Shown piece by piece: positions 389-42,712 of a stretch of 64,000 nucleotides of DNA. The DNA is taken from assembly GCA_020184695.1 (NCBI GenBank), contig JAANOX010000034.1, forward strand, positions 248,001-312,000, read 5' to 3'. Source of the DNA: Histomonas meleagridis 2922-C6/04-290x (Eukaryota > Protista > Parabasalia). Numbering within the stretch: position 1 is the first letter of the stretch; the number at the start of each line of letters is the position of its first letter. Below the pieces are notes generated by a model. It saw only the letters and a program-made list of their open reading frames with translations. It was not told the origin of the DNA and ran no database searches. The translations under genes were made by a program, and so were the position numbers.

Positions 389-3041
389 TTATTTAGTAAG
401 CATTTGAATAATATCAGCGTATCCATTATTGGATGCATACATAATTGCTGTTTTGAATAATTTAAAAAAATTCCAAACATTTTCATGAAATATTAAATTA
501 TCAAAATAGACAAAAATTAAAATAAACAAATATCTTTAGCATTAATATCAATTCCTTTTTGCTTAACAAGTAATTTAACGATTTCTGTGTTACCACAACG
601 AGCTGCATAAATAAGTTCTGTCCAAAATAATTAAAATAATTTCCAAATATTATATACAAATATTATATTTTCAAAATAAACATTTAATAAAATTAATAAA
701 TATCCTTGGCATTAATATCAATTCCTTTTTGCTTAACAAGTAATTTAACGATTTCTGTGTGATAAAAACGAGCTGCATTATTAAATGCTGTTCGCAATGA
801 TTATAAAGGATTTCATTAATTATTTTGAAATATCATATTATTAAAAGAAATTTTAAATGAAATAAATAAATATTTTTAATATTAACATCAATTTTCTCTT
901 GTTCAAGAAGTAATTTAACTGTTTCTATGTGACCATTTCGAGATGCCCAAATAAGAGCTGTATCAAATATTTTCAATAATTTCCAAAATTTATTTTGAAA
1001 CATTAAATTAATGTTGAAAAAATTATATATAATAAATATATATCTTTTGCATTGATATTGATTCCTTCTTTTTCTAAAAGTAATTTAACGATTTCTGCAT
1101 AACCTTGAGAAGATGCCCATATAAGTGCAGTGGAAAATATTTTATATAATTACCAAATATTATTTTGAAACATCAAATTAATAAATTGAATTTTAAATAA
1201 AACAAAAATATATCTTTAGCATTAATATCAATTCCTTCTTGTTCAAGAACTAATTTAACAATTTCTGTATAATCAAATTGAGATGCTCTCATAAGTGCTG
1301 TATCAAATAATTTAAATAATTTCCAAATATTATTTTGAAATATCAAATTATCAACACAAATCTTAAATAAAACAAATAAATATCTTTAGCATTAATATCA
1401 ATTCCTTCTTGTTCAAGAAGTAATTTAACTATTTCTGTATAACCATTTAAAGATGCTTTAATAAGTGCTGTTTTAAATAATTTAAATAATTTCCAAATAT
1501 TATTTTGAAAATTTAAATAATTAAAATAAATATTAAATAAAACAAATAAATATCTTTAGCATTAGTATCAATTCCTTCTTGTTCAAGAATTAATTTAACT
1601 ATTTCTGTATGACCATTTTCAGATGCATATATAAGTGCTGTATTAAATAATTCAAATAATTTCCAAATATTATTTTGAAATATCAAATTATCAACACAAA
1701 TCTTAAATAAAGCAAATAAATATCTTTAACATTTACATCAATTTCTTTTTGGTCAAGAATAAATTTAACAAGTTCAAAATTTTCTGATTCTATAGATTTA
1801 AGCAAAATATCCATAGGAATATTATTATTTTTGAGGAAATGTTTTACAAGATATAAGTTTCCTATTCTTACACACTCATTGATAGTAAAATCATCAATAT
1901 CCAGACCTTCTTTTTCTAAAAACGAAAGAATTTCATAACTTCCATTGATGATACACAAATAACCTAAGTCATTAATATTTTGGTACATTTCATCATTTTG
2001 CTGGTCGCGAAATAAATATGATAATGAACGTCTATATATTATTGAATTATTTTGAATATTTTCACTAAATTTTTCTAATTCTTTTTCATAAATATATTTA
2101 AAGACATCATTTCGATGATATTCAATTGCTGCTCCATATGAACCATAAAATGATGAATGATTTTGTTCACATAAATGAATAATTGCAATGTTTCCTCCTG
2201 CAACTGCATATTTACCTGTGTTATATACTTCAGCACCATTCATAAGCAAATATTTAAAACATTTTATCGATCCAAAAAATGCTGCATAATCAATTAATGA
2301 AACATTTTCTTGATTTATAAAATCACATCTTTCATAAAGTGATGGTTCAATTGTTTGATTAACATCAAAATCTTTTTGTGATATTATTTCTTGAAGTTTT
2401 TCTATTTCATCATTTCGAATTATTTTTGCAATTTCATTTGGATTATGCCCTTCTTTAACATATTTCTTATGAAGCTCAAAATTATTCTGTGAAAGTTTTT
2501 CATAATTTTTTATAAATGATCTTTCAATTGGATCATGTATCACAAAAGCAAATCTAGAATTTCTGCATTGTTTGATTTCTTTATTTTCTTTATATTGCGC
2601 AAAATATTTTGATTTAATATTTTTTGTTATATCTTTATCAATTAAATTTCTTTCAATCATGTTCTCTATAAGATAAAATGCTTCATGAGTACTAATTTTT
2701 GTTGTGTGATTGATAAAAAAGTCGATGATTTTATAATTATTTTTACAAGTTTTTTCTTCTTTCTTTTGAATCGTTTCAAAATAATGTAAGTAAAAATTGA
2801 AACTTGAACTTGTTATATTCTTTTGAGATGAAATTGAATAATAAGTCAAATAACTTATTATAAAATTAAAAGAATACGAAAATATTGGATCATATAAATT
2901 CATTGTTTTTTGAACTGATGATTCAAAATTTTCTTCTGATAAATTAAATATGATTTGTTCAAGCAAGATAAGTTTTTCCATTTCTGGGTCATTCCCTTCT
3001 CTCTTTTTGAAAAAAATACGATTCCTATTGTTAGAGTACAT
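389..3041 (-). CDS. DUF3447-type ankyrin protein; first segment 3041-1716, then 7 internal 102-nt ankyrin cassettes and a terminal half-repeat (457-389), split by eight 68-nt inserts
   Basis: ORF 1683-3041 has LIDYAAFFGSIKCFKYLLMNGA (DUF3447-like) and ends DVNVKDIYLLYLRFVLII*. Downstream, TALxxAxxxGxTEIVKLLLEQEGIDINAKDI cassettes recur every 170 nt. The last reads FKTAIMYASNNGYADIIQMLTK* with the stop at 391-389. Confidence 0.85.
458..1715 (-). repeat. 170-nt period array (102-nt ankyrin cassette + 68-nt insert); inserts at 458-525, 628-695, 798-865, 968-1035, 1138-1205, 1308-1375, 1478-1545, 1648-1715
   Basis: Hand alignment: the period is exactly 170 nt in all units despite sequence divergence. 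Confidence 0.92.
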
Positions 3042-3049
3042 ATTTAAAA

Positions 3050-3055
3050 AAGTGA
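3050..3055 (-). promoter_or_regulatory. Inr-like core promoter (TCACTT)
   Basis: Minus strand reads TCACTTTTTTAAATATG, 8 nt before the ATG at 3041; fits the trichomonad initiator TCA(Y)(T/A). Confidence 0.65.
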
Positions 3056-3277
3056 TCTAACAAATATATAAACGTGCTTCTAATATTAAAATTTAAAAAC
3101 ACAAATATTAAAATATAAAAAAATTATCATAATATAAATTAAGAATGTAACTTCATACTAATGTAAGGAAACATATTTGATAATTTTTTATATTAATCAA
3201 TGATTAAAAAAAAAAATCTAAAATACAATTTACAATTAAAATTTAATAAAAATTATATACTTTTATATAATATTTAA

Positions 3278-5647
3278 TTAAACGAAAATTCCCAACAATT
3301 TTTTAGCGTTTTCTTTACACTTTTCATCACCATTTTCCGCCGCCATTTGTAGTAATCTTTTAACTCCATTTATTTTGACCAAAAAGTCCTTCTGTTCTTG
3401 CTGACATACAGTCAACACAACTATTAACAAATCCACGAATTCATACAACAAATTTAATGACAATTCTGTTAATTTGACCACTTCATTAATTATTTTAAAA
3501 GCGATTACAATCATTTTACTTCTAATTTCTATGTTATCTATTTTTAATAAAGAAGTACAACATTCGACAACTGAAACAATGAAAGATAAATTTGGTTTAT
3601 CATCATCCGAAGTTTCCATCATTACTTCAGACGCAGAATCCACAACATCAGTCAATGTTAAAGTATAATTTAATATTAAATTTGGATAATAAAATAAAAT
3701 GGAACTAATTGTATCAAGTGTCGCAGGCATTATTTGTTGAGACAAATCAGGATTAGCCAATAAAATCAAACAATGTTCGATAAATGTCGGAACAAATTTA
3801 GAGATATCAAATCTTCGTATGATAAATGTTAAACAATTTAATGCGGATATAACTTCATTAAAGTTATTACCTTCGATAAGTTTATTATTAATAACTTCTA
3901 ATGTAGTTTGTAAAAATGGTAAAAAGTTTTGATTCAAAACTACACTTAAAACTCCTATTAAATGTAATCCTGCTGAAGATGAAAAGGTATTAATTGCCGC
4001 CAAAGAAATTTGAAAAATTTGTTTGAAGTCAATTAAATTCATATCCATTTTTTCACATGAATGAATTAATATCGATGAAAGTAAATCTAATGAAAAAGAT
4101 AAAACTTCATCATTTGGACATTTCTCTAAAAATATCGAAGTAAATTGTATAACATAAGGTAATATTGATAAACATAAATCTGGATCAGCCATTATACGTA
4201 TATAAGAGATTAAAAATTCGATTAAAGTTATTGATAAAAATGAATTTTCATATGATGCTATCATTGATATAATTGATGGTAATAAAGGTGAAATATTTAC
4301 AAGTGTTGTAAGTTCTAATAAAGCTTCAGATGCATTATGAACTAATATTTCATCATTACTTGATAATGCCTTTAAACATATCTCAATATATTCACTTGGA
4401 TTATTTAAATATTTCACTATTTCTATCAGAATTAATATTCCATAATTCATGATGCGTGGAATCGGACTTTGAAGTGATATTTTTGTGACTTGTAAAGATA
4501 ATTCAAGAATAAATTCAATGACGTTTTTGTTTTTAGTTAATAATAATGAATATATCGAATGAAGTGTTATTATGATGTTATCTTTGTTTTGTTGAATAAA
4601 ATTAAATAAAAACTTACAACAATCTTCAGGACATACACGACAATATGAGATAATTGCGGTATATGAAGCTGATGTTAAACTCCATTCTTCTTCAGGAAAA
4701 CAATTTTCTCGTTTATCTTCAATTAGAATTTGAAAAAATAATGGAATCATTTGCATATAACTATTTAATATAAACTGATGTGAATTGTTTTTATGACTTT
4801 GCTCTGTTTTCGATAATGTAATACAAAAGCGTAAAATGTTAAGCGTTAAATTAGAATTAATGCTTTTATAATTAAGTAATAAATTATATGAAATTTCAAT
4901 AATTTGTGTGAAATTTTGGAGATATGAATAACATTTAGGTACAATCTCTGACCATAAAAGAAAACATGAATCAGAGAGAAGTGGAACCGTGGTAAAATGA
5001 AGAAGATTTAGAAGATAAAATTGTGGATTTTCTGATAGAATTTGGAAAAACTCATTTTTGAAATCGGAAAAAATTGGAAGACAAACGCCACGACTAAAGT
5101 CAGATGTGGTTTCAAGACACATGTACTGAAATATTGAGCGGAATATAAATTGTTTTTGCTCAAAACTAAGATAAAGATCATTTGTAATGATTTCTAAGGC
5201 CATAACAGAACATACTATTAATGGCTCAGGCGAATTGTTTTGAATTGAAACAATAAGTTGATTAAGATCAGGACATGCTGGATTAGCATGGAGTCGAAAA
5301 ATTGCAAAACGTCCATATGATACAGCAGCATGAAAACGGACATTTTCATTTGGGTGGTTAAATAAGTTATAAAGTGTGGCAACTATAGCGTCCAATAAAG
5401 TTTCATTAAAAATTGCAATTGGATTTCCATGAAGCGGGATTTTAGATGGAAGAACTTTGCGTAATAAAATTATTGCGAGGTTTAATGCCGACTCATGAAG
5501 CTTATTTGAATTTATTGCGTTTAATAAATACTCTAAATAAATCGGTGGACTTTCTTGATAAAGTTTAATAAATATTTGATCTGCTTGCTGAGAGGTACCA
5601 TTTGGGTTATATGAATTTAGAGCAAGAATTATTTGATCAAATTCCAT
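3278..5647 (-). CDS. HEAT/ARM-repeat protein, importin-beta-like
   Basis: 789-aa Leu/Ile-rich helical ORF; the N-terminus (QADQIFIKL...LNLAIILLRKVL...NENVRFHAAVSYG) resembles karyopherin-beta HEAT repeats. Confidence 0.55.
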   Translation of the reverse strand: MEFDQIILALNSYNPNGTSQQADQIFIKLYQESPPIYLEYLLNAINSNKLHESALNLAIILLRKVLPSKIPLHGNPIAIFNETLLDAIVATLYNLFNHPNENVRFHAAVSYGRFAIFRLHANPACPDLNQLIVSIQNNSPEPLIVCSVMALEIITNDLYLSFEQKQFIFRSIFQYMCLETTSDFSRGVCLPIFSDFKNEFFQILSENPQFYLLNLLHFTTVPLLSDSCFLLWSEIVPKCYSYLQNFTQIIEISYNLLLNYKSINSNLTLNILRFCITLSKTEQSHKNNSHQFILNSYMQMIPLFFQILIEDKRENCFPEEEWSLTSASYTAIISYCRVCPEDCCKFLFNFIQQNKDNIIITLHSIYSLLLTKNKNVIEFILELSLQVTKISLQSPIPRIMNYGILILIEIVKYLNNPSEYIEICLKALSSNDEILVHNASEALLELTTLVNISPLLPSIISMIASYENSFLSITLIEFLISYIRIMADPDLCLSILPYVIQFTSIFLEKCPNDEVLSFSLDLLSSILIHSCEKMDMNLIDFKQIFQISLAAINTFSSSAGLHLIGVLSVVLNQNFLPFLQTTLEVINNKLIEGNNFNEVISALNCLTFIIRRFDISKFVPTFIEHCLILLANPDLSQQIMPATLDTISSILFYYPNLILNYTLTLTDVVDSASEVMMETSDDDKPNLSFIVSVVECCTSLLKIDNIEIRSKMIVIAFKIINEVVKLTELSLNLLYEFVDLLIVVLTVCQQEQKDFLVKINGVKRLLQMAAENGDEKCKENAKKLLGIFV

Positions 5648-5982
5648 AATTTTTGCGATTTTAGCTCTCGACCAGAAACGAAAACGTTTATTTTCTAATG
5701 GGGTGCCTTATATTACAACGTTGAGACTTAACGGCTGATAAATGAAAAATTATGGTTTTATCTTATTCACAATCAAAGATAAATCAATTTTAACTATGGT
5801 ATTAAAATTTAATTTTATAATAAGTATTATGTTTCAAATTTAAACATTTTCAAGTTTGTTTTCAATAAGAAATGACAAGAAAAACATTGGCTTTGCTTTA
5901 ATCATAAATGTAAACTATTGTAAAATTTCTTCCTCAATATTCGGTTTAATTCAATTGAAATCTATCGTATATAAATAATCGA

Positions 5983-7701: not shown

Positions 7702-8430
7702 TTAAAAGTTATTCATAATTACGTAATGAAGAGCTTCTGATGCTGGAATTCTTTGAAAAGGATTTAGACAAAGCATTTGTGAAATCAGGTTGACTAACAG
7801 TGGGTCTGTATTCTTATTATTTTGTTGCAAAAGCAATTCTATCCTATATTTGGTCTCATTAAACGTTTCACCAACGATTCTTTTTATACGATTGAGGGTA
7901 CAGTATTCGTCTCTTTCTAAAAACAAAGGCTTTCTAAAGATCATCTCAGCGATGATGCATCCCATACACCAGATTTCTGATGAAAATGTATACAGTGCAT
8001 CTGGATTTTCAATGAGTTCTGGTGCTCGATAAAGCAACGGTACATAATTATGTGCACCACCGAATTTTACATAGTGGAATGAAGATATTTTAATATTGTT
8101 ATTTTCATCGATAAAAATTGTTGCTGGGCTTAAGTTACAATGAAGAAGTTGGTTGGAGTGAAAGGTATACAAACATGAAAGCATTTGACGTGCATAATGT
8201 TTGATTTGTTCAGGACGTAGTTCACTCATAAGGTAAAACTGACATATATTGACAGGAATTTGCTCATATTCTATAAAAAATTTCCCATTATTGTATTGAA
8301 CATTGAATCTAATAATGTTTGGATCATTGAATTTAGCCAAAATACAAAATGCAGAAATTGTTTGCATATCTTCATTGCTTATGTTGTTTTCATTTGTGAA
8401 TGTGTGATTTGAAAAAGACAAGTTAATCAT
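7702..8430 (-). CDS. CMGC/CDK-like protein kinase fold, probably a pseudokinase
   Basis: YRAPEL and IWCMGCIIAEM are retained; HRD is replaced by HCN, DFG by SFH; no Gly-rich loop. Confidence 0.8.
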   Translation of the reverse strand: MINLSFSNHTFTNENNISNEDMQTISAFCILAKFNDPNIIRFNVQYNNGKFFIEYEQIPVNICQFYLMSELRPEQIKHYARQMLSCLYTFHSNQLLHCNLSPATIFIDENNNIKISSFHYVKFGGAHNYVPLLYRAPELIENPDALYTFSSEIWCMGCIIAEMIFRKPLFLERDEYCTLNRIKRIVGETFNETKYRIELLLQQNNKNTDPLLVNLISQMLCLNPFQRIPASEALHYVIMNNF

Positions 8431-9730: not shown

Positions 9731-10024
9731 AGATATTTTTAAACATCGATTTCTTTAACAGTCGAATTGAATAAGAAACGATCAAATTTTTCACAAATAT
9801 GTTTGAATGAAAGACGATAAATTATGTGATGGGAAATATGTTTCGGCGTCTTACAGTGAATCCAAGCAAATTTAGACTTAACAAATGTGTTAATGGAATA
9901 CCCTATGCAAGGCCATTTGGAAAGTTGCATTTAAAAGAGTATAATTTGTTATATTATAAAAATGAATTTCAATTTCCATTTTTATTTTGTGCTTACATTA
10001 AAGATTATAACAAGAGCTGGTTAA

Positions 10025-10087
10025 ATAATAATACTATCATATAAAATAATAATACTATCATATAAAAATAATACTATCATATAAAAT
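10025..10087 (+). repeat. ~20-nt tandem repeat x3 (AATAATACTATCATATAAA)
   Basis: Three near-identical copies visible in the intergenic sequence. Confidence 0.85.
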
Positions 10088-10171
10088 AAATGCATACCTC
10101 ATGCGATTAAAAAATGATATTATGGAAGAATATATGTGAATATTTAAAGCTACTTTTAATGAAAAACTGTT

Positions 10172-11061: not shown

Positions 11062-13084
11062 TTATTTAATAGCATTTTCAAGAAGTTCAATAATTTCAGT
11101 GTTTCCTTTATCTTTTGCAATTTCAAGTGCAGTTTTCAATAAAGTAAATAAACATGAATTATATATTTGAAACCCAAAATTGTAAATATAAGCACACAAT
11201 AAGAGATATATTCATTTATAGCATTAAGATTAATGTCATCATGTTTAAGAAGTGCTTTAATTATCTCAACATTTTCACGTTCAGTAGCAAATAAAAGTGC
11301 TGTTTGGAACTTTATGAATAAATTCCAAATTTTAATGTAAAATATTAAATTATTGAAATAAGCCATAATTAAAATTAAGAAACATCTCTAGCATTTATAT
11401 CAATTCCTTCTTGTTCAAGAAGGAGTTTAGCAGCTTCAGTGTGATTTTTTGCACAGGAAGACATAAGAGGAGTCCAAAATATTTATTATATATTCCAAAT
11501 ATTATATTGATATCAGAAACTATTTAATTAATTTTCATATGTACAAAACAAATATCTTTTACATTAATATCAATTCCTTCTTGTTCAAGTAATATTTTAA
11601 CAATTTCTATATTACCAAAAAAGGATGCACAAATAAGTGGAGTATTAAACAATTTTATGAAATTTGAAAATAATTTATCAAATAATAAATTATTAAAATA
11701 ATCATTAAAATAATAATAAAAATATCTTTAGAATTAATATCTATACCTTTTTGCTCAAGAAGTAATTTAAAGATGTTTGTATATCCATATTCAGATGCAA
11801 TATGAATAGCTTTCCTAAATAATTTGAATTATTTCCAAATTTTATTTTTAAATATTAAATTTCTTGAATTAACTTTAATCAATTCAATAAAACATCTTTA
11901 GCATTTATATTTATACCTTTTTGATCAAGAAAATATTTCACAAGTTCAATATTTCCTGAAGATGTTGAGTAAGCTATAATATTACTTGGGATTTCTGTTT
12001 TTTCCATAAAATATTTAGAAAGATAAAGGTTTCCGTTACTTGCTGCTGTATTAAACATTGATTCATTAATATTTATTCCTTCATCTAGTAAAAATGAAAG
12101 AATTTCATAATTATCAAAAAAAACGCATTTCATTCCTAAATCAGTTAGATCAGGTACTTCAATTATCTTATTATTATACAAATATTTAAAGATATCATTT
12201 CGATGAAATTCAATTGCTGCTTCATATGAACTATATTTTAATGAATGATTTTGTTCACATAAATGAATTATTTCAGTATTTCCTCCTGCGATTGCATATT
12301 TACCTGTGCTTTCTAATTTTGCTCCATTCAACATCAAAAATTTAAAACATTTAATTGATCCAAAAAATGCTGCATAATCAATCAATGTAACATGATTATA
12401 GTTAACAAATGAACATTTCTCATAAAGTGATGGAATAATTCGTTGATTAAAATCAAAGTTCGCTTGTGATGATATTTCTTGAAGTTTTTCGATTTCATCA
12501 TTTCGAATTATTTTAGCAAGTTCATTTGGATTAATTCCTTCATGCATTAATTTCTGATGAAGTTCCCAATCATTCTGAGAAAGGTCATTGATGTTTTCTA
12601 CAAGATTTTTCCAAAACAAACTTTTGTTTTCATAATCAAAAAATTCATCCATCATTGGTGTTTTGTTTTTTATTGAGTTTGCTGTTTTTTCAATTCTATA
12701 TTGTGCAAAATAAATTGAATTCTTACTTTTTATTATATCTGATGATATTAAGTTTTCTTCATACATACTCCAAAGAAGATAATTTGCTCCATTTTTAGAA
12801 AAGAAATGACATATAACATAAAGAAAAATTTCTATAATATCAATGCCTTTTTCATTAATATGTTTTCTTAATTCTTTTAAAAAAAGCAAAAGCTGATTTT
12901 TATCATATCCTGTAGAGCAATAAAAAGAAAAGGCAATTCTGCATATATTAAGAGAAAAAGAATATGGATTTGTTTTATCAAATAATGAAATGATTTTATG
13001 AATTGATGAATCGATGCCTTCTTTTACAGAATTAAAAATAATATGTTCAAGAGATAAAATTGTGCTAAGGTTTTGCTGTGACAT
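11062..13084 (-). CDS. DUF3447-type ankyrin protein; first segment 13084-11888, four 102-nt cassettes and a terminal half-repeat (11139-11062), split by five 68-nt inserts
   Basis: ORF 11879-13084 ends GININAKDVLLN*. The cassettes read FRKAIHIASEYG, FNTPLICAS, FWTPLMSSCAKN, FQTALLFATERE; the last reads LKTALEIAKDKGNTEIIELLENAIK*. Confidence 0.85.
11140..11887 (-). repeat. 170-nt period array; inserts at 11140-11207, 11310-11377, 11480-11547, 11650-11717, 11820-11887
   Basis: Hand-counted: all five inserts are 68 nt and all internal cassettes 102 nt. Confidence 0.9.
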
Positions 13085-27036: not shown

Positions 27037-28365
27037 ATGCAACAGCAACAACGAAAGCCAGCGAAAATTCTTCTTATAATTTTAGATGGACTTGGAGATA
27101 CTACACAAGAAATTGAAGGCCGTCAAGGGACATGTTTAGAACTTAGTCGACATCCAACGTTTGATTCTTTTACACGCACAGGTTTAGTTGGATTGATGGA
27201 TTCAGTATCACCAGGGTTACCATGTGGTAGTGACACAGCACATTTATCGTTATTTGGTTATCCACCTTTTACTTATTATAACGGTCGAGGAGCATTTGAA
27301 GCATTAGGAGGAGGTATGCCTATGGAACCAGGGGACATTGCATTTAAATCCAATTTTTCTACTATGTATGGAGATGTCGTTCGATATCGTCGTTGTGATC
27401 GACATTTTGAAGTTGAAGGTCCAATATTATGTCAATATTTAGATGGAGTTAAGATTCCAGAATTTCCTGAAGTACAAGTTTCCATCGCTTATGCCACAGA
27501 ACATCGTTGTGCAGTTCGAATTCGTGCTCCTAACATGAGTGATCACATTACAGGCACTGATCCAATTCATGACAATTTACCATTACTTCGATCAGAGCCA
27601 TTAGATGATGATCCGAAGTCATTTTTATACTTCTAATATTGTTAATAAGTTATCTGATGTTTTACGGGAGAAACTTAATTCACATGAAATCAACAAGAAA
27701 CGTATTGAAGAAGGGAAAGAACCAGCGAATGTTATTTTGCTTCGTGGTCCAGGGATGCGTATGAATGTTGAAACATTTGAAAAGCGACATCAAGTTCGTA
27801 CATTTTTGATAGCGCCGACAGCCATCATTGCCGGCTTAGGGATCAGCGTTGGTTTACCCATTGTTAAAGTCGACGGAGCGACCGGTGACATGGACAGTAA
27901 CTACAAAGCTAAATCCAAATCAGCGAGTGATCATATTATTAGTGAAGAATATGATATGGGTATTGTTCACATTAAAGGTACAGACGACGCTGCGCACGAC
28001 GGGAAACCGAATAAGAAAGTTGAACTTATTGAACGAGCTGACGAAGCCATTGGAGAACTCATTAAGACATTAAGTGCATATGAAGTTGAACACGACGAAC
28101 GCTTTATCATTGGTGTTGTTGCAGATCACACGACGTCGTCGAAGTGGCTTGACCACACATTCGAACCCTATTCCAGTTTGTTTTTACAGAAATCTCTAAA
28201 GCAGCAGAAGCGTTGGGATATCAGCACAAGCGTAACGAGACACCGTACATTCCATCAGATCATATTGAAAGTTATAACGAAATTACTGCCGCGCGTGGAA
28301 GTTTAGGACGCTTTTGTGGATCGAAACTTATGGAACTTTTATTGAAATTGTCCGGAAGGAAATGA
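27037..28365 (+). CDS. apgM: 2,3-bisphosphoglycerate-independent phosphoglycerate mutase, archaeal/ApgM type (small frameshifts near 27632 and 28170-28185)
   Basis: ILDGLGD, GLPCGSDTAHLSLFGY (catalytic Ser), GRGAFEALG, HIKGTDDAAHDG, ADHTT. The full frame can be rebuilt using the mirror copy. Confidence 0.88.
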
Positions 28366-28599
28366 AATGAAACAAAAGCATGAATGAATAAACAAATAAA
28401 TTCCATATTTTATGTAAACATCTGTAAGGGGAAATTCAGTAATCACAACATAAAGATTAAATACATTTCCTCATGCATTATTTATCTCAAATGTAGAGCT
28501 TCAAACTTATCGTGACACTTTTTCTTGAATGAATTTATTTAATGAAATTTCAATGGGATATTGTCAGAAAAACCAAAAAAGTTGAATCAAGGATATCGT

Positions 28600-30142
28600 T
28601 TATACGATCTGTGAGAAGACATACGACAAGCTAGCAGCCGAACCGTAAAAGAATGCCGCAATCGGGAGTGCCACGGTGCAAAGGATGCTATATAATTTTA
28701 ATGTTTTGACACCATCAGGATCTTCCTCAATTTTTATTTTTTCTTCTTCTTCTTTGCTATCATTTCCCTCAGGGTCATATTGTCCAGCCACAACTGTTAT
28801 ATCTTCGTTATTAAGTTCTTCATCATCAAGTTGGTTATCTTCATTTTCTCCTTCATTCTTACCATCTATAATATCTTTTTCTTCACTCATGAAATCGAAC
28901 ACGAAGAATGTATACATATAACCTATTACAGGCAAACATGCAATGACAAACAGAAGGTAAAGGACATTCTTACTAAATGTGATGTTAGGATCTGAATTTT
29001 CATATCCAATTGTTAATGAATTAGAAGCTATCAAAACGAAGGCTTCTATTATATCTTTCACATTATCAGATACTGCAGAGTGTGGTCTACAAATCCCAAG
29101 AACTACAACCCAAACGCATTCAATTACAAGACACCCTATTGGAATGTCAAACCCACCAACGACTGCATAAACAATTTGGTGTGCAGTCGATGCTAACTCG
29201 AACCAACGCCAATTTTTACTTTTATAATCCTCAGCGATACTTTCATGTCCACCTAAAATGAGGCAAACTTTTGTAGCGAAAGGAAAAGCGACATTAAAAA
29301 TTGCATAAAATGAAACTACTGGCCAATATAATCCATATGATGATTGTATTACATCCAAGAAGAGTTCAGTTGTTGGTATCAACAAATAATTTGAAATAGA
29401 TATCACCAAATTTAACATTTTCTTGGCAACAAAAAGGATATTATCTTTACAATATGCCACTACATTAATTATTACTGACAAAACTATTATTATTGCATAA
29501 CATATACAAGCCACTATGGTTAAATTTGTTTTCACACTATAAATAGGTGCAGCTATTATATGAAATATAAATAGTCCCATTATCACCGATGAAAACACTT
29601 GAATTGGAGTAATATGTGGTAATACAGTTGCGTTTGTCATTGATATAATTAGGAAAAACCCAGGGAAGCCAAATATCATGAAGAAGAATATTAATTTACT
29701 TTCACATTTTCCAAGTGCATAAACTAATCCTCCAGCCGCTAACACGCCAATACCGACATAAACGAAAATCATGAAATTAAATGAAATTCCGGCGCCTATT
29801 AATGCTAATGCTGCAGCGCCTGGAACATTAACAAATGAACCTGAAACACCACGACATGTATTAATGACAAAGAAAAGTTGAAATAAAGTCCACGCCATTG
29901 AATATAAAACAAAATTGTCGACGTTTGACATTTGTTCAATTGGCGTAAATTGACTTTTAATTACTTCTATAAGGTTATAAGCCCATGAAAATAGTTGAAT
30001 GGATGACTCACTTACTTTAGAACGAAAGATTTTAGTTGCCGCCATTCTTTGGAATGTTTGAATAACTGATATAGTTTCTTCAAGAAGTGATTTTTGATTC
30101 CTTAAACAGGCCAAAGATTTGACCTAATGCTTCTATCAACAT
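28600..30142 (-). CDS. Multi-pass membrane protein with an acidic loop, function unknown (1-nt frameshift near the 5' end)
   Basis: Many hydrophobic segments and an EDNQLDDEE acidic stretch; start MLIEALG inferred from the mirror copy at 33128. Confidence 0.75.
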
Positions 30143-33127: not shown

Positions 33128-34622
33128 ATGTTGATAGAAGCATTAGGTCAAATCTTTGGCCTGTTTAAGGAATCAAAATCACTTCTTGAAGAAACTATAT
33201 CAGTTATTCAAACATTCCAAAGAATGGCGGCAACTAAAATCTTTCGTTCTAAAGTAAGTGAGTCATCCATTCAACTATTTTCATGGGCTTATAACCTTAT
33301 AGAAGTAATTAAAAGTCAATTTACGCCAATTGAACAAATGTCAAACGTCGACAATTTTTGTTTTATATTCAATGGCGTGGACTTTATTTCAACTTTTTCT
33401 TTGTCATTAATACATGTCGTGGTGTTTCAGGTTCATTTGTTAATGTTCCAGGCGCTGCAGCATTAGCATTAATAGGCGCCGGAATTTCATTTAATTTCAT
33501 GATTTTCGTTTATGTCGGTATTGGCGTGTTAGCGGCTGGAGGATTAGTTTATGCATGGTTTTTTCCTAATTATATCAATGACAAACGCAACTGTATTACC
33601 ACATATTACTCCAATTCAAGTGTTTTCATCGGTGATAATGGGACTATTTATATTTCATATAATAGCTGCACCTATTTATAGTGTGAAAACAAATTTAACC
33701 ATAGTGGCTTGTATATGTTATGCAATAATAATAGTTTTGTCAGTAATAATTAATGTAGTGGCATATTGTAAAGATAATATCCTTTTTGTTGCCAAGAAAA
33801 TGTTAAATTTTGGTGATCTCTCTTTCAAATTATTTGTTGATACCAACAACTGAACTCTTCTTGGATGTAATACAATCATCATATGGATTATATTGGCCAG
33901 TAGTTTCATTTTATGCAATTTTTAATGTCGCTTTTCCTTTCGCTACAAAAAGTTTGCCTCATTTTAGGTGGACATGAAAGTATCGCTGAGGATTATAAAA
34001 GTAAAAAAATTGGCGTTGGTTCGAGTTAGCATCGACTGCACACCAAATTGTTTATGCAGTCGTTGGTGGGTTTGACATTCCAATAGGGTGTCTTGTAATT
34101 GAATGCGTTTGGGTTGTAGTTCTTGGGATTTGTAGACCACACTCTGCAGTATCTGATAATGTGAAAGATATAATAGAAGCCTTCGTTTTGATAGCTTCTA
34201 ATTCATTAACAATTGGATATGAAAATTCAGATCCTAACATCACATTTAGTAAGAATGTCCTTTACCTTCTGTTTGTCATTGCATGTTTGCCTGTAATAGG
34301 TTATATGTATACATTCTTCGTGTTCGATTTCATGAGTGAAGAAAAAGATATTATAGATGGTAAGAATGAAGGAGAAAATGAAGATAACCAACTTGATGAT
34401 GAAGAACTTAATAACGAAGATATAACAGTTGTGGCTGGACAATATGACCCTGAGGGAAATGATAGCAAAGAAGAAGAAGAAAAAATAAAAATTGAGGAAG
34501 ATCCTGATGGTGTCAAAACATTAAAATTATATAGCATCCTTTGCACCGTGGCACTCCCGATTGCGGCATTCTTTTACGGTTCGGCTGCTAGCTTGTCGTA
34601 TGTCTTCTCACAGATCGTATAA
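33128..34622 (+). pseudogene. Duplicate of the multi-pass membrane protein, frameshifted and with a ~55-60 nt deletion
   Basis: Fragmented ORFs 33128-33466, 33358-33681, 33551-33853, 34161-34622 match 28600-30142. Confidence 0.75.
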
Positions 34623-34856
34623 ACGATATCCTTGATTCAACTTTTTTTTTTTTTCTGACAATATCCCATTGAAATTTCATTAAATAAATTCATTCAAGAA
34701 AAAGTGTCACGATAAGTTTGAAGCTCTACATTTGAGATAAATAATGCATGAGGAAATGTATTTAATCTTTATGTTGTGATTACTGAATTTCCCCTTACAG
34801 ATGTTTACATAAAATATGGAATTTATTTGTTTATTCATTCATGCTTTTGTTTCATT

Positions 34857-36182
34857 TCATTTCCTTCCGGACAATTTCAATAAAAGTTCCATAAGTTTCG
34901 ATCCACAAAAGCGTCCTAAACTTCCACGCGCGGCAGTAATTTCGTTATAACTTTCAATATGATCTGATGGAATGTACGGTGTCTCGTTACGCTTGTGCTG
35001 ATATCCCAACGCTTCTGCTGCTTTAGAGATTTCTGTAAAACAAACTGGAATAGGTTCGAATGTGTGGTCAAGCCACTTCGACGACGTCGTGTGATCTGCA
35101 ACAACACCAATGATAAAGCGTTCGTCGTGTTCAACTTCATATGCACTTAATGTCTTAATGAGTTCTCCAATGGCTTCGTCAGCTCGTTCAATAAGTTCAA
35201 CTTTTCTTATTCGGTTTCCCGTCGTGCGCAGCGTCGTCTGTACCTTTAATGTGAACAATACCCATATCATATTCTTCACTAATAATATGATCACTCGCTG
35301 ATTTGGATTTAGCTTTGTAGTTACTGTCCATGTCACCGGTCGCTCCGTCGACTTTAACAATGGGTAAACCAACGCTGATCCCTAAGCCGGCAATGATGGC
35401 TGTCGGCGCTATCAAAAATGTACGAACTTGATGTCGCTTTTCAAATGTTTCAACATTCATACGCATCCCTGGACCACGAAGCAAAATAACATTCGCTGGT
35501 TCTTTCCCTTCTTCAATACGTTTCTTGTTGATTTCATGTGAATTAAGTTTCTCCCGTAAAACATCAGATAACTTATTAACAATATTAGAAGTATAAAATG
35601 ACTTCGGATCATCATCTAATGGCTCTGATCGAAGTAATGGTAAATTGTCATGAATTGGATCAGTGCCTGTAATGTGATCACTCATGTTAGGAGCACGAAT
35701 TCGAACTGCACAACGATGTTCTGTGGCATATGAGGGAAACTTCGACTTCAGGAAATTCTGGAATCTTAACTCCATCTAAATCTTGACATAATGTTGGACC
35801 TTTAACTTCAAAATGTCGATCACAACGACGATATCGAACGACATCTCCATACATAGTAGAAAAATTGGATTTAAATGCAATGTCCCCTGGTTCCATAGGC
35901 ATACCTCCTCCTAATGCTTCAAATGCTCCTCGACCGTTATAATAAGTAAAAGGTGGATAACCAAATAACGATAAATGTGCTGTGTCACTACCACATGGTA
36001 ACCCTGGTGATACTGAATCCATCAATCCAACTAAACCTGTGCGTGTAAAAGAATCAAACGTTGGATGTCGACTAAGTTCTAAACATGTCCCTTGACGGCC
36101 TTCAATTTCTTGTGTAGTATCTCCAAGTCCATCTAAAATTATAAGAAGAATTTTCGCTGGCTTTTCGTTGTTGCTGTTGCAT
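34857..36182 (-). pseudogene. apgM: Duplicate iPGM (ApgM type), several frameshifts (real or sequencing error)
   Basis: ORF pieces 35687-36226, 35197-35775, 34857-35372 tile the protein; ATG at 36182. Confidence 0.8.
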
Positions 36183-36648
36183 AACTTATTTAATGTTGAA
36201 AAATTGTTTTGTAAATAACCGAACACTTAACTTCTTTCAATTCAATCGTTTCTTTACTTTATCTCGGTGACGGTTATTTCTTCGTTGTTCAATTCAATTC
36301 ACTCGTCAGATTTCGATTTACTCTTTATGCATTTATTAGACTTATTTTCAAATTTATGATGGTGTTAAGGAATGTAAATAAAAATTTGAAGATAATTATA
36401 TCTATGATTTTTTTTGATATGTATTTTCACCACATTTCAAACACTTTCTCGAGATATGATAAAAATAAGTAATGAGATATTGATTCAATCATTATTTTTA
36501 TTTCTATTTCATTTTATTATAAAACAATGTTTATTGAATAAAAATTTACAAAATTTTACGTTTTAATAATGTTTATATATTACCATGAAAATATTTTAGT
36601 ATCATTTTTCATCTCAAAATTTATGGCTTATATTATTTATTATGATAA

Positions 36649-39449
36649 TCATTGTGATTCTTTGTACTTCTGTATTTCAAGAACTATTAAAATGTGGTGC
36701 TTTTTATTTGCAATCATAAGCGCTGTTTCAAATGTTTCGTTTAATCCCCAAATATTAATTTTATGTATTAAATATTTAAAAGATGTTTTGTGATCAAAAA
36801 GATATATTTTTTGCATTGATATCAATCCCTTTTTGTTTAAGAAGAATTTGTACAATCGATAAATGTCCATTTTTACATGCAACCATAAGTGATGTATTAA
36901 ATATTTATTAGAATCACCAAAATTCATTTTGAAATTCGTAATTATTAAATGATATTTTAATGATAATGTTGAAATATTTTGTGAATTAATATCAATATTT
37001 TCTTGTTCAAGAAGTAATTTAAATATTTTATCAAAACTTTTCCATGATGCTATAAAAAGTATTGTTTTATATATTTTAATTAAATTCCAAATATTATTTT
37101 TTAAAATATTATGATTAAAAAAAATATTAAATAATACAAATTATTATTTTTATAATTGATATCAATTCCTTTTTGTTCAAGAAGAATTTTAACAATTTCT
37201 ATATTCCCTTTAAGTACTGCATAAATAAGTGCCGTTTCAAATAAATTTAATTATTTCCAAATATTATTTTGAAATATCATTTAGTATAATTAAATTTTAT
37301 ATATAATTAATAAATATCTTTAGCATTAATATCAATTTCTTTTTGTTCAATAAGTATTTTTCACTATATCATAATGATTATACTTACATGAAATCATTAA
37401 TGCTGTTTCAAATGATTTAGTTAATCTCCAAATAAAATTTTTATATTATAAATTTATTGAAATAAATATTAAATAATATCATTTTTTTATTATTGATATC
37501 AATTCCTTTTTGTTCAAGAAGAATTTTAACAATTTCTGTATTTCCTTTAAATACTGCATAAATAAGTGCTGTTTCAAATAATTTGCTTAACTTTCAAATA
37601 TTATTTTGAAATATCATTTTATTATAATAAAGAAACATCTTTGGCATTAATATCTATTTGTTTTTGATCAAGAAGTAGTTTAACAATATTATAATGATTA
37701 TAGTCACATACAATCATTAATGCTGTCGTAAATAATTCATATAATTTCCAAATATAAAAATGAAAAAATGTTTTATTTAAATAAATGTTATTTATAACAA
37801 ATAAATATTCTTAGAATTAATATCAATTTTTATCTTGTTCAAGAAGTTCTTTAACAATATTATATTGATTATATTTACATCCGATCATAAATGCTGTCTC
37901 AAATTTTTTTATATTAATTTTCAAATATTGTTTTGAAACATCATTTTTATTAAAACAAATTTTAAATAAAAGAATTTCATATTTTTAATATTAATATCAA
38001 TTGTTTTATATTCAAGAATTTTTTTCAAAAATTGAATATTTCCTTTTTGTGACGCTATCATTAATGCTGTTTCAAATATTTATAAGAATTTCCAATTATT
38101 ATGAAGAAATATTATTACATTAAAAGAAAAATTATATAAAAAGAAATTCATGTTTTGAATATTAAAATCAATTTTTATTTTGTTCAACAAGAAAGTTAAA
38201 TATTCCTTTACGATTATCTTTAATTATTTGCATAAGTGATGTATTAAATATTAAACTTAATCCCCAATGTTTATTTTGAAATTTTATATTATTCAATGAA
38301 ATTTTAAAATAATATAAGAAATATCTTGTAAATTAATATCAATTCCTTCTTGTGATAGAATTAATTTCATGATTTCAAGTTTTTGATATTGATATAATTT
38401 CATGAAATTGAATTTGTTTTTTCTTTTAAGATATAACTTAATCAAAATTATATTATCATTCATGATTAACTTTCGAATTATTCGATTGTTTATTTTTGAG
38501 CCCTTCTCTTTCAAAAAATAGTAAAATTTCATAATTATTATAGAAAATACTTTTATAACTCATTTCATTTAAATTATATTGACTTAAAATGTTATTATCA
38601 TAAAGATATTTAAAAATATCATTTCGATGAAACTCAATTGATGTTTCATATGCATCTTCAAATGATGAATGATTTTGTTCACATAAATGAATGATTTCAA
38701 GATTTCCACCTGCAATTGCATATTTTCCTGTGTTTTTTAATTTTGCACCATTCAATAATAAATATTTAAAACATTCAATTGAGCCAAAAAATGCTGCATA
38801 ATTAATTAATGGAATATTTTCTTTGTTAATAAATGAAAATCTTTCATAAACTGATGGTTTAATCATTTGATTAAAATTAAAATTATTTTGTGATGTTATT
38901 TCTTGAAGTTTTTCTATTTCATCATTTCGAATAATTTTTGAGATTTCATTCGGATTAACTCCTTCTAAAATTAATTGATTATGAATTTCATTATCATTAT
39001 TTGAAACTTCTTTATAAATAGGGAAATCTTGTTCTTTAATCATTTTTGTTTTAATGTATTTTTTTGTTGAATCATCTTTTTCAAGAAGATAATAAGATTC
39101 ATTCGAATGTATATTTAGAAGTATTTCTGATAATATTTCAAAAATTCCTTTGTCATTTCGTTTTATTTGTTTTATTTGATCTTGAAGAAGATTTAAATAT
39201 TGAAAATATATTTCTTCTTGATTCATTCTTGATAAAAAGCAGAATATATTAATCTACAAATCATTTTATTAAAAGAAAATGTATATTCTGAATCAATTAA
39301 AGAAATCGTCGTTTTGACTGAAGTTTTTTTATATTCGTTTCATTTAATGAAAATATTGTTTTATATAACAAAAAAGAATGTTGTCTTTCAATTTCATTTT
39401 GCAAGAATTCAGTGTCTACTATTTGAAGATGAGTTGGATTGTTTATCAT
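36649..39449 (-). CDS. Mirror copy of the 23926-26570 DUF3447-ankyrin gene with 10 inserts; several homopolymer frameshifts
   Basis: ORF 38456-39226 etc.; retains a 49-codon segment missing from the left copy. Confidence 0.75.
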
Positions 39450-39986
39450 AAAAGAAATTAGATTAACGGTTTCAAATACTTTTCTGTGATGCTCTATCGT
39501 ACCATTTTTTCATAACTTTACGTGGTGGCCGTTATTGTTTCGCCAAACACACACTTGCAAATTGGCAATAAAAAATCAGATTGATGAAAGATTAGAATTA
39601 TAATTGATATTATTGAATAATTTTTGAATCATAGATTTTGACTAGGTCTGTCCGACGGAATAAACGATTCCCTTAAATATTTTGATGTAGAATTGTGTTA
39701 GAAAGTTTTTTAGGATAGCCTGATCAGTAGTATTGACTGTGCATATAAATTAATAATTAAAAGGAATTCTGGAAAGAGGATCGTTCGTTGACTGTTTTAA
39801 TAATTTGAAACAGCACTTTATATATCAATTAGAAATAATAAAATAACTTTAAGATAAAGAAGGAATTGATGTTAATCCAAAATTTATTATTTTGAATATT
39901 TTATAATATGTTTTAATAATTTGGAATGTACTTTTTAATTGGCGATAATAATAAGCTTACTTTTTATTATTTTATTTTATGAAATA

Positions 39987-42712
39987 CTTTATCTTATGAT
40001 TTAATTATTATTCAAATGATATATTATTCCTTTGTGATTAAAAATAATAAAGTGGATTTATTTTTAAATATTATAAAAGAAATAAGAACATTTGAAGAGA
40101 ATAATCAAATCAAATCGAATATATTTGATATATTTGGGCGATTTCTTAATAATAAACATACATATGAATCATTTTATCTTCTTGAAGCTATGATTGAACA
40201 TAATTTTCTTGAACCAAACATTGTAAAAACAACAAGAGTGCTTATTTTGGGCATCATGTGTCTAAAGATAAAGAATCAATCGGTTTAAGGAAACATTTAT
40301 TTGTACATGTCTTACCAAATTATGAAGAACTTTCAAAGAATGATTGGGAATTACATAAGAAATTAATCAGAGAAGGACATAATCCAAATGAAATAGCAAA
40401 AATAATTAGAAATGATGAAATAGAAAAACTTCAAGAAATATCATCACAAACAAATTTTGATTTTAATCAATTTATTGTTCCATCACTTTATGAAATGTGT
40501 TCTTTAGTTAATAAAGGAAATGTTAGATTAATTGATTATGCAGCATTTTTTGGATCAATTCAATGTTTTAAATATTTACTTATGAATGGTGCAAAAGTAA
40601 TAAACACAGGTAAATATGCAGTTGCAGGTGGAAATCTTGAAGTTTTAGTTGAATATTTTCTAAAAGAGCATGCAATTCCTCATGACACATTGGTATTTTC
40701 ATCTGGATCAGGAAATATTGAACTTGTTAAATACGTTTTAAAACAAGAAGGAATTGATATTAATGCTAAAAATATTCATTTGTTTTATTTGAAATTTATT
40801 TTAATAATTTAATATTTCAAAATAATATTTGGAAATTATTTAAATTATTTTTTACAGCACTTATGTATGCATCTAGAAATGGTCATACAGAAATAGTTAA
40901 ATTAGTTCTTGAACAAGAAGGAATTGATATTAATGCTAAAGATATTCATTTGTTTTATTTAAAATTTATTTTAATAATTTTATATTTCAAAATAATATTT
41001 GGAAATTATTTAAATTATTTAAAACAGCACTTATGTATGCATCTAGAAATGGTCATACAGAAATAGTTAAATTACTTCTTGAACAAGAAGGAATTGATAT
41101 TAATGCTAAAGATATTTATTTGTTTTATTTGAAATTTATTTTAATTATTTAAATTTTCAAAATAATATTTGGAAATTATTTAAATTATTTAATACAGCAC
41201 TTATGATTGCATCTTCAAATGGTCATACAGAAATAGTTAAATTACTTCTTGAACAAGAAGGAATTGATATTAATGCTAAAGATATTTATTTGTTTTATTT
41301 AAAATTTATTTTAATAATTTGATATTTCAAAATAATATTTGGAAATTATTTAAATTATTTAATACAGCACTTATGTATGCATCTAGAAATGGTCATACAG
41401 AAATAGTTAAATTAGTTCTTGAACAAGAAGGAATTGATATTAATGCTAAAGATATTTATTTGTTTTATTTGAAATTTATTTTAATTATTTAAATTTTCAA
41501 AATAATATTTGGAAATTATTTAAATTATTTAATACAGCACTTATGATTGCATCTTCAAATGGTCATACAGAAATAGTTAAATTACTTCTTGAACAAGAAG
41601 GAATTGATATTAATGCTAAAGATATTTATTTGTTTTATTTAAAATTTATTTTTAATAATTTGATATTTCAAAATAATATTTGGAAATTATTTAAATTATT
41701 TAATACAGCACTTATGTATGCATCTAGAAATGGTCATGCAGAAATAGTTAAATTAGTTCTTGAACAAGAAGGAATTGATATTAATGCTAAAGATATTTAT
41801 TTGTTTTATTTGAAATTTATTTTAATAATTTGATATTTCAAAATAATATTTGGAAATTATTTAAATTATTTGATACAGCACTTATGTATGCATCTAGAAA
41901 TGGTCATACAGAAATAGTTAAATTACTTCTTGAACAAGAAGGAATTGATATTAATGCTAAAGATATTTATTTGTTTTATTTGAAATTTATTTTAATTATT
42001 TAAATTTTCAAAATAATATTTGGAAATTATTTAAATTATTTAATACAGCACTTATGATTGCATCTTCAAATGGTCATACAGAAATAGTTAAATTACTTCT
42101 TGAACAAGAAGGAATTGATATTAATGCTAAAGATATTTATTTGTTTTATTTGAAATTTATTTTAATAATTTGATATTTCAAAATAATATTTGGAAATTAT
42201 TTAAATTATTTAATACAGCACTTATGTATGCATCTAGAAATGGTCATACAGAAATAGTTAAATTAGTTCTTGAACAAGAAGGAATTGATATTAATGCTAA
42301 AGATATTTATTTGTTTTATTTGAAATTTATTTTAATAATTTGATATTTCAAAATAATATTTGGAAATTATTTAAATTATTTGATACAGCACTTATGTATG
42401 CATCTAGAAATGGTCATACAGAAATAGTTAAATTAGTTCTTGAACAAGAAGGAATTGATATTAATGCTAAAGATATTTATTTGTTTTTATTTGAAATTTA
42501 TTTTAATTATTTAAATTTTCAAAATAATATTTGGAAATTATTTAAATTATTTAATACAGCACTTATGATTGCATCTTCAAATGGTCATACAGAAATAGTT
42601 AAATTACTTCTTGAACAAGAAGGAATTGATATTAATGCTAAAGATATTTATTTGTTTTATTTGAAATTTATTTTAATTATTTAAATTTTCAAAATAATAT
42701 TTGGAAATTATT
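39987..42712 (+). pseudogene. Mirror copy of the 21070-23149 DUF3447-ankyrin gene; start region deleted, 82-codon internal deletion, 11 cassettes and 12 inserts, 3' truncated
   Basis: Junctions at 39986/39987 and about 40645 compared with the left arm; array at 40780-42712. Confidence 0.75.
40780..42712 (+). repeat. Homogeneous 170(171)-nt tandem array of ankyrin cassette + insert, 12 inserts
   Basis: Inserts start at 40780, 40950, 41120, 41290, 41460, 41630, 41801, 41971, 42141, 42311, 42481, 42652. Nine are 68 nt, two are 69 nt (extra T in a T run), the last is truncated. Confidence 0.95.

Follow-up and report, generated by a model that had tools for sequence, protein, structure and literature searches.

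Spacer-interrupted ankyrin repeats in DUF3447 genes of Histomonas meleagridis as candidate substrates of a non-canonical RNA excision

A stretch of 64,000 nucleotides from the parabasalid Histomonas meleagridis 2922-C6/04-290x (contig JAANOX010000034.1, positions 248,001 to 312,000, of assembly GCA_020184695.1), referred to here as the window, contains seven loci of a gene family that combines DUF3447 with ankyrin repeats. In each locus a first open reading frame (ORF) is followed by an array in which further ankyrin repeats, or cassettes, alternate with short AT-rich spacers. The sequence shows directly how the arrays are built, that the cassettes are under selection and the spacers neutral, and that the spacers have neither canonical splice signals nor RNA structure. 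With a probability put at about 0.5, a non-GT-AG, intron-like removal of the spacers from RNA would join one exon per repeat, and this reading is favoured over one in which the cassettes serve as alternative terminal exons. A preliminary description of this DNA had proposed an undescribed processing step, and this stands in so far as the cassettes appear functional and canonical joining is ruled out, while the mechanism itself is a proposal; among the mechanisms that it listed, non-canonical RNA excision remains the best candidate.

Anatomy of the arrays and constraint on the cassettes

Tandem Repeats Finder reported arrays with a period of 170-172 nt at 432-1769, 21070-22019, 25589-26079 and 40742-42712, and a search with a cassette profile located 55 cassettes in the seven loci, all of them 3' of an ORF for DUF3447 and ankyrin repeats and oriented as it is (Table 1). 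As parsed, the array unit is an in-frame ankyrin cassette of 102 nt followed by an AT-rich spacer, typically of 68 nt. The preliminary description had held that inserts recur at the same point of the later ankyrin repeats, had counted 56 of them and had found 68 nt to predominate; the arrays, the cassette profile and the parsing all bear out the first point, the 46 measurable spacers together with the terminal and truncated ones come close to 56, and 35 of the 46 are indeed 68 nt long, with 29 distinct sequences among them. The remaining lengths are 69 nt (three spacers), 52 nt (two), 61, 64, 67 and 70 nt (one each), and 242/243 nt (two spacers, each containing one degenerate cassette). In the single-copy loci L1-L3 every one of the 14 cassette-to-cassette spacers is 68 nt long (8 in L1, 4 in L2, 2 in L3), a length that is constant despite sequence divergence of up to about 40%, and the terminal spacer measures 68 nt in L2 and 51 nt in L3.

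Every first ORF stops at or inside the first spacer. The arrays of the five untruncated loci close, after the last spacer, with a cap half-repeat and a stop, as had been described, and those of L4 and L7 are broken off mid-spacer by unrelated DNA. Matches to the spacer profile in the window are confined to the ankyrin arrays, and Mob1, Meckelin and other genes are unbroken, in agreement with the earlier statement that housekeeping genes lack the insert. Pfam matches to DUF3447 (PF11929) and to ankyrin repeats were obtained in 7/7 first ORFs, whose homologues are DUF3447 proteins of Histomonas, Tritrichomonas and Trichomonas. Two further claims held in part. Seven loci do carry arrays, but only five are independent, since L4/L7 and L5/L6 are mirror copies in a palindrome; and the intact long first ORF that had been described for all loci is split in L4, L6 and L7, probably by base-calling noise.

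Constraint on the cassettes was evaluated by a permutation of stop gains, in which the substitutions of each cassette from the consensus were moved randomly to positions with the same original base and new stops were counted. In 21 non-redundant cassettes the ankyrin frame had acquired 3 new stops versus 23.8 expected (P<0.001), whereas the wrong cassette frames had acquired 26 versus 35.3 and 35 versus 35.1, and the three spacer frames 21 versus 22.7, 12 versus 16, and 18 versus 24.1. Stops are thus avoided in the ankyrin frame only, which argues that the cassettes are kept open in that frame and that the spacers are untranslated in every frame; translation of the spacer in another frame was ruled out by this neutral stop gain. 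In the protein, variability is low in the ankyrin framework (1.26 bits) and high at positions of the hairpin and the surface (2.51 bits). Across loci and species the first cassette has a sequence type of its own, which it has retained, so that no conversion from the downstream cassettes is seen. Pairwise distances of spacers and cassettes are correlated (Mantel r=0.80, P=0.0002, slope about 1), which indicates that the unit was duplicated as cassette plus spacer and that the cassettes diverged already interrupted. The ratio dN/dS, which had been suggested as a refuting test, came to about 0.86 between loci in the ankyrin frame, but wrong-frame controls gave 0.58 and 1.17, so that it has no power in this AT-biased sequence and is uninformative here.

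A natural disruption is provided by the Histomonas locus L014 (WSYJ01000186.1), in which an insertion of about 1.2 kb at 4822-5919, with a transposase-like ORF of about 274 aa that is likely of mariner type, breaks in two the first ORF of P0010, the nearest homologue in Histomonas; as annotated, P0010 is a chimaera terminating inside this insertion. Stops or frameshifts break 5/13 cassettes in L014 and none in the intact Histomonas loci L003 and L013, so that cassette intactness depends on the upstream gene. A decaying tandem pseudo-repeat or satellite does not agree with the stop avoidance in the ankyrin frame, true decay being what is seen in L014. Together, these results support, indirectly but strongly, the view that the downstream cassettes are functional and must still matter.

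The same anatomy is found in relatives. The L1 ORF has its closest homologues in proteins of gut-type scaffolds from metagenomes (ENA) and in three H. meleagridis proteins that carry the annotation 'caskin', and most close homologues stop exactly at '...GIDINAKDI' or a few residues into the spacer. The contigs of the metagenomic relatives are genomic DNA with 68-nt spacers and open cassettes between them (L001, L002, L004, L008, L010, L011), and L008 has a terminal segment of 43 codons. Among the Histomonas loci, L003, at JAANOX010000047.1:243184-252470, has ten open cassettes in shifting frames, spacers of 35-63 nt, and a terminal segment with stop, and L013, at WSYJ01000138.1:90624-99222, is built in the same way. 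Spacers of L014 measure 68 nt (five), 71 nt (two) and 51 nt (two), so that both the 68-nt and the 51-nt class are common to the window loci and L014, and the overall range in Histomonas is 35-79 nt. The public gene model of L003, an ab initio AUGUSTUS prediction, halts in the first spacer. The public proteins P0014 and P0015 ('cask-interacting protein'; L003/L013, GCA_020184695.1 / GCA_020186115.1) likewise stop there, with 4-10 open ankyrin cassettes and a terminal segment lying unannotated downstream, and the DUF3447-ankyrin family is probably mis-modelled genome-wide in Histomonas. A scan of JGI metagenome contigs with a 22-nt spacer core gave two unrelated chance matches and no cassettes.

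The family also has an uninterrupted form. P0017, a protein of 740 residues from a more distant trichomonad, is colinear with the L1 ORF up to '...NFNIKD', which is the exact break point, and past it runs on through about 210 residues of unbroken ankyrin repeats to a cap; given this contiguous array, the loci look like one-exon-per-repeat versions of the normal family architecture. Spacer-less cassette joins were seen only twice, at 1758-1961 in L002 (34-codon period) and at 6843-7043 in L014 (33-codon period), and are possibly spacer losses.

Spacer signals, unit boundaries and candidate mechanisms

A GG dinucleotide, mostly as part of TTTGG, lies exactly 15 nt before the next cassette in 41/48 distinct spacers, with 52 GG in total in 3200 spacer positions, a pattern that is far beyond chance. 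In Histomonas the distance from GG to cassette is 15 or 18 nt. It is still 15 nt in the 51-nt spacer of L3, which indicates that the 3' distance is fixed and the 5' distance is free to vary; in the last spacer of L2 the length of 68 nt is kept and the GG is shifted. Spacer length is 3n+2 in 41/48, and nearly all spacers have an early in-frame stop, as would be expected if retention of a spacer must be harmless.

Canonical splice signals are missing, and the statement in the preliminary description that the inserts are not ordinary trichomonad introns is upheld. GT is present at spacer nt 1-2 in 1/48 and at nt 3-4 in 22/48, with most of the diverged copies lacking it; a terminal AG is found in 1/48, [AT]CTAA[CT] near the 3' end in 1/48, and CTAAC anywhere in 0/48. 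When 15-20 nt on either side of the boundaries were searched, a GT..AG pair that kept the frame and left no stop was available at 3/44 window-clade junctions, with none for AT-AC or GC-AG, and at 2/8 junctions of Histomonas L003. With these signals absent and the GT..AG pairs breaking the frame, canonical splicing cannot join the cassettes. No stable RNA structure was found in single-sequence folds of the spacers (mean minimum free energy z = -0.34, 29 copies), RNAalifold gave no consensus pairs for 40 aligned spacers, and no Rfam match occurs in the window; an intron of the tRNA bulge-helix-bulge or the IRE1 type was rejected for lack of a helix or loop structure by RNAalifold and of an Rfam match. 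Three other candidates were discarded. A CAG at cassette nt 8-10 as acceptor is present at only 31/48 junctions and is out of frame, and codon 2 is stop-free throughout the window clade; a mini-gene starting at an in-frame ATG (codon 6) would need a methionine that only some cassettes have; and an introner-like or MITE-derived intron family does not agree with a profile confined to the ankyrin arrays and with spacers that co-diverge with their own cassettes. The spacer sequences showed no terminal inverted repeats, for which no dedicated search was run.

The unit boundaries are narrowly constrained. Because the first spacer codon is a stop in L1, L2 and L5 and the last one is a stop in L3, the cuts can lie no more than a few nucleotides from the 102/68 boundaries. 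In the relatives, codon 34 of the cassette is a stop at 7/13 distinct junctions, with all three stop types occurring and with a stop at three consecutive junctions of L010, and codons 1-33 contain 0 stops in 429 codons; in the window loci codon 34 is a stop in 0/35 and is almost always T-N-T. Removal of codon 34 together with the spacer (71 nt) leaves 0/48 distinct junctions with a stop and gives 99-nt exons of 33 codons, the canonical ankyrin length, whereas removal of 68 nt with 34-codon cassettes leaves a stop at 7 of 48. Among boundary pairs near the nominal cuts 71 nt is the smallest uniform stop-free removal, and removing further whole codons is likewise stop-free. Because codon 34 is so often a stop in relatives, the unit was revised, and a functional unit of 99-nt exon plus 71 nt is more likely, on these codon counts, than one of 102 plus 68; the exact 68-nt insert with a 34-codon cassette that had been described gives way to a 71/33 division that fits all species.

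In the favoured reading, each locus would be a single gene in which every ankyrin repeat has its own exon. After the first ORF, with the N-terminal domain, DUF3447 and first cassette, would come 99-nt exons, between 3 and at least 12 in number, and a last exon comprising the terminal capping half-repeat with its stop, and the mature protein would be a long ankyrin solenoid like the uninterrupted homologues of other trichomonads. At each junction about 71 nt (codon 34 and the 68-nt spacer) would be removed, the other length classes being 51/52 nt here and 35-79 nt in Histomonas. The 5' cut would fall just past a conserved ATATT at the cassette end, where an in-frame stop often follows immediately, and the 3' cut would be set 15 nt (sometimes 18) downstream of the conserved TTTGG, with neither GT..AG nor the trichomonad ACTAAC branch/3' motif taking part. 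The enzyme might be a spliceosome with radically relaxed signals or a different activity. In this scheme removal at the level of RNA, the precise positions of the cuts and the enzyme are what we infer. Excision of every spacer agrees with the architecture of the homologues, with exon lengths strictly in multiples of 3, and with a single cap at the end. A broader proposal, in which RNA excision of a second, non-GT-AG kind would exist in the Histomonas/Dientamoeba clade and act on AT-rich substrates of about 50-71 nt, with a 3' cut 15 nt from TTTGG and needing neither terminal dinucleotides nor structure, is offered more tentatively.

Several observations weigh against excision of every spacer. 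No joined cassettes were found in the public proteins searched, and expression data for the organism seem absent from databases. With one cassette as phmmer query, the best 150 matches were generic giant ankyrin proteins, none with a DUF3447 N-terminus or the family junction, and a word-indexed search with a read-through ORF of L4 (described below), restricted to cassette 2, gave no joined-cassette candidate. Pooled dN/dS is about 0.86, and the cassettes diverge as fast as the spacers. A conserved donor is lacking, old arrays show decay at the spacer 5' end, and the spacer boundaries follow no terminal dinucleotide rule, the last of these being at odds with what is known of spliceosome chemistry. 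Neither a simple splicing model nor any other model weighed accounts for the strict length of 68 nt. Codon 34, never a stop in the window loci, is often one in relatives, and the cut site may differ between species; spacer-less joins are of both kinds, one with 33 and one with 34 codons. Finally, no more than one or two introns per gene, with strict motifs, have been reported for trichomonads (PMC12316389). As trichomonad intron pipelines drop junctions without canonical motifs (PMC12316389), however, the lack of earlier reports is not evidence against excision.

The alternative that survives best, although an unlikely one, is that the cassettes are alternative 3'-terminal exons. Only the first junction would then have a donor, and each downstream cassette would be an alternative last exon with a GG-N15 acceptor, a stop of its own, at codon 34 or among the first few spacer codons, and 3'-end signals, so that each mRNA would consist of the first ORF and one variable repeat. 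This would account equally well for the protection of the cassette reading frames, and it suits the conservation of the spacer 3' half (GG-N15) everywhere while the 5' end decays in old arrays, as well as the stops of the relatives, which lie exactly at codon 34, are of all three kinds and occur at three consecutive junctions in L010. In addition, a GT at spacer nt 3-4, as GTTTTATTT, matches the type-B 5' motif GTWYWD with T at +8/+9 (PMC12316389) and is commonest at first junctions; the enrichment of TTGTTTT there is weak, however (about 8/12 versus 4/10 downstream, read by eye), and the acceptor would still be non-AG. Against this reading, neither the strict multiple-of-3 cassette length nor the constant spacer length is needed by a terminal exon, just one cap half-repeat is present, at the very end of each array, and homologues in other trichomonads have the entire array contiguous.

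Somewhat less probable again is that the cassettes are unexpressed, with the protein ending in the first spacer and the arrays being either decaying 3'-end tandem duplicates or a silent library of gene-conversion donors. Termination of all first ORFs within or at the first spacer, the public annotation of P0014 and P0015 ending there, the satellite-like 170-nt period, the absence of a joined product from the databases searched, and the dN/dS and rapid cassette divergence given above would all follow. Against this stand the strong frame-specific stop avoidance with its negative controls, the framework/surface pattern of conservation, the long open terminal segments, and the conservation of spacer length and GG position across the window loci, the relatives and Histomonas. 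The silent cassette library of the preliminary description is specifically disfavoured by the first cassette, which keeps its own sequence type in all loci and species with no conversion seen, by the retention of caps, and by the decay of L014 after disruption of its upstream ORF by a transposon.

Programmed excision of the spacers from the DNA of an expressed gene copy, in the manner of the internal eliminated sequences of ciliates, is improbable. Although the spacers are short and AT-rich, need precise removal and lack splice signals, and although the 71-nt boundaries start with TA in 27/48 and end with TA in 36/48, a removal from TA to TA that keeps one TA takes 69 nt and breaks the frame (by hand calculation). 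Moreover, spacers are present in all independent assemblies, metagenomic and Histomonas, the only 2 spacer-less joins seen are both fixed in assemblies, and parabasalids are not known to have a germline/soma split. Translational recoding, whether as ribosomal bypass or as frameshifting with read-through across each spacer, is barely credible: the stop of the relatives directly after the last constrained codon does recall the take-off site of T4 gene 60, where a stop directly follows the last decoded codon, the consensus spacer has no stop in the frame of the following cassette, and TTTAAAT heptamers occur, but take-off and landing codons are the same in at most 4/48 junctions, spacer lengths fall in all three mod-3 classes (51, 52, 68, 71; Histomonas 35-79), stop gain is neutral in every spacer frame with 15/48 spacers closed in all three, no hairpin is conserved and 8-12 successes per protein would be required, so that bypass, which had been listed earlier, and frameshifting are excluded.

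The seven loci, the palindrome and neighbouring genes

Coordinates of the loci are collected in Table 1. The L5 array has one indel-broken and one degenerate cassette, and its last spacer is 68 nt long; L6 differs from L5 by small indels, with different cassettes broken in each. The L7 array is the youngest and most homogeneous. GC-richer unrelated DNA, starting GGGTAAATTGCACAACCGCAGACC, abuts the L7 and L4 array ends at 42713-42903 and 20879-21069, and the gene may have been truncated there by a mobile element, of which this DNA would be one end.

Table 1. Positions of the ankyrin loci and associated features in the window
Feature	Positions	Strand	Description
L1 first ORF	1683-3041	-	452 aa: N-terminal domain, DUF3447, ankyrin repeats, first cassette 1716-1817; stop inside first spacer
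L1 array	389-1715	-	8 spacers, all 68 nt; 7 open 102-nt cassettes; terminal half-repeat 457-389 and stop
L2 first ORF	11879-13084	-	401 aa, DUF3447 and ankyrin; first cassette 11888-11989
L2 array	11062-11887	-	4 open cassettes, 5 spacers of 68 nt; terminal half-repeat and stop 11139-11062
L3 first ORF	18329-19105	-	258 aa, weak DUF3447 match
L3 array	17369-18328	-	Most divergent; cassettes 18071-17970, 17901-17800, 17731-17630; spacers 68 nt
L3 end	17578-17369	-	After 51-nt spacer with in-frame stops: open 69-codon terminal segment, acidic tail, stop
L4	21070-23149	-	First ORF in two parts (22592-23149, 21694-22512); 6-cassette array 21070-22083; mirror of L7
L5	23926-26570	+	First ORF 23926-24930; array 24805-26418; terminal half-repeat and stop 26487-26570; mirror of L6
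L6	36649-39226	-	First ORF 38456-39226; array 36800-38418; terminal segment 36732-36649; mirror of L5
L7	40258-42712	+	First-ORF remnant 40258-40812; 12 cassettes, 95% matches; stops mid-spacer at 42712
Representative unit	41358-41527	+	Cassette 41358-41459 (codons 1-33 constrained; codon 34 = 41457-41459), spacer 41460-41527
Invariant GG of TTTGG in representative unit	41511-41512	+	Sole strongly position-fixed spacer signal across species
Inverted duplication holding L4-L7	about 20879-42903		Near-perfect, 22 kb; centre about 31630

Outside the ankyrin arrays the arms of the palindrome have 0 mismatches over several kilobases, and differ by homopolymer indels of one nucleotide and a few longer T-runs. 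Since the arms differ almost only in this way, base-calling noise is the probable source of the 67- and 69-nt spacers, of the cassettes of 103 nt and of the splits in the first ORFs of L4, L6 and L7. The first ORF of L4 is split by one extra homopolymer A at about 22590, relative to L7, and the first spacer of L4 (21913-21981) is 69 nt long through one extra T, the mirror spacer in L7 being 68 nt; the 69-nt spacer can be read in frame, which yields a 272-aa ORF crossing the spacer into cassette 2. Elsewhere in the palindrome (27037-30114 versus 33128-36226), genes that are whole or in two pieces on one arm, such as a 504-aa ORF at 28600-30114, are in three or four overlapping-frame pieces on the other, a fragmentation consistent with indel errors rather than real pseudogenes. 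The pattern looks either like a palindrome of very recent origin with errors in its long-read consensus or like an artefact of fold-back assembly.

The window is gene-dense, with a GC content of about 27%. Meckelin, RasGEF, RapGAP, a SacI-domain protein and Mob1 are encoded by one unbroken ORF apiece, and the Mob1 of the window is 96% identical to that of Histomonas meleagridis, 80% to that of Tritrichomonas and 59% to that of Trichomonas; this places the organism in the Histomonas/Dientamoeba clade of parabasalids. The Histomonas genome has been described as intron-poor, with 28% GC and one predicted intron in about 5% of genes (PMC8529796). A kinase-domain gene at 7702-8430 (minus strand, 242 aa) begins at position 34 of the Pkinase profile, without the glycine-rich loop; an upstream exon for it, sought so as to have a conventional intron for comparison, was not found, and it may be a pseudokinase. 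Two further tandem repeats are unrelated to the ankyrin arrays: a perfect 18-nt repeat at 61648-61696 (2.7 copies) and an AT-rich 21-nt repeat at 10023-10089 (3.3 copies, 91% matches).

Comparison with known systems

Parabasalids are a textbook case of minimal splicing: a genome has about 60-80 introns, a gene one or two at most, and the GT...ACTAACACACAG code is unusually rigid. Like the type A (>50 nt) and type B (23-28 nt) introns of trichomonads (PMC12316389), the spacers are short, AT-rich and located in parabasalid protein-coding genes; their commonest 5' end (GTTTTATTT from nt 3) fits a degenerate type-B 5' motif (PMC12316389), and both have a signal at a fixed short distance from the 3' cut. 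Unlike these introns, the spacers have no conserved GT (GYAYGY / GTWYWD) at the 5' end and no 3' AG fused to a branch motif (RCTAACACAYAG / TCTAAC..AACAG), and such GT..AG pairs as exist in them break the frame (41/44 junctions). For trichomonad introns, moreover, one or two per gene is the reported maximum, whereas there are 4-12 spacers per gene, all at the homologous point of a tandem repeat. If the spacers are excised, a whole class of intervening sequence is invisible to motif-filtering pipelines, and Histomonas gene models of the DUF3447-ankyrin family, and probably of others, are truncated at the first spacer; a lineage otherwise at one or two strictly canonical introns per gene would carry out many excisions per transcript. 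If the cassettes were instead alternative terminal exons, they would represent the first programmed alternative processing in a trichomonad-like organism.

One exon per repeat is an architecture found in repeat-protein genes, those for animal ankyrins being an example. The likeness to animal ankyrin genes extends to a 33-residue repeat per 99-nt exon, the same intron position and phase, and tandem duplication of exon plus intron, but the introns there are of the usual GT-AG kind, vary in length and belong to intron-rich genomes. Ciliate internal eliminated sequences are likewise short, AT-rich inserts that interrupt ORFs and are precisely removed without splice signals; they are, however, TA-bounded and removed from DNA in a somatic nucleus, excision from TA to TA would break the frame in the spacers, and nuclear dualism is not known from parabasalids. 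Bypassing elements (T4 gene 60; yeast mitochondrial byps) share with the spacers a non-coding gap in an ORF and, in some copies, a stop after the last decoded codon, but the spacers have no matched take-off and landing codons and no hairpin, are of variable length and occur many to a gene. The silent cassettes of Borrelia vls and Neisseria pilS are comparable as promoter-less, mostly open tandem cassettes beside an expressed family gene; here, in contrast, no conversion into the first cassette is seen, cap and stop are kept, and spacer length and motif are conserved.

The closest precedent for nuclear intervening sequences without GT-AG is provided by the non-conventional introns of euglenids and diplonemids (PMC6221363, PMC12501133), which are said not to occur in other eukaryotes, outside Euglenozoa (PMC6221363). 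Boundaries in the euglenid introns are, as in the spacers, 'slidable' through short direct repeats, and the Euglena cuts are set by motif spacing (N3-CDG ... CHG-N5-6|R; PMC12501133), a logic that GG-N15| before the putative cut in the spacers resembles, though with another motif. Euglena requires complementary CAG/CTG motifs that pair the intron ends, whereas the spacers have neither a complementary 5' motif nor a consensus structure, and motif, spacing and lineage (Metamonada) are all different. If excision is correct, this would be the first class of non-conventional nuclear introns outside Euglenozoa, and such introns would gain a second, mechanistically different origin beyond euglenozoans. 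The unit, being compact (about 70 nt), repeated and naturally mutagenised, also offers a substrate for dissecting the mechanism.

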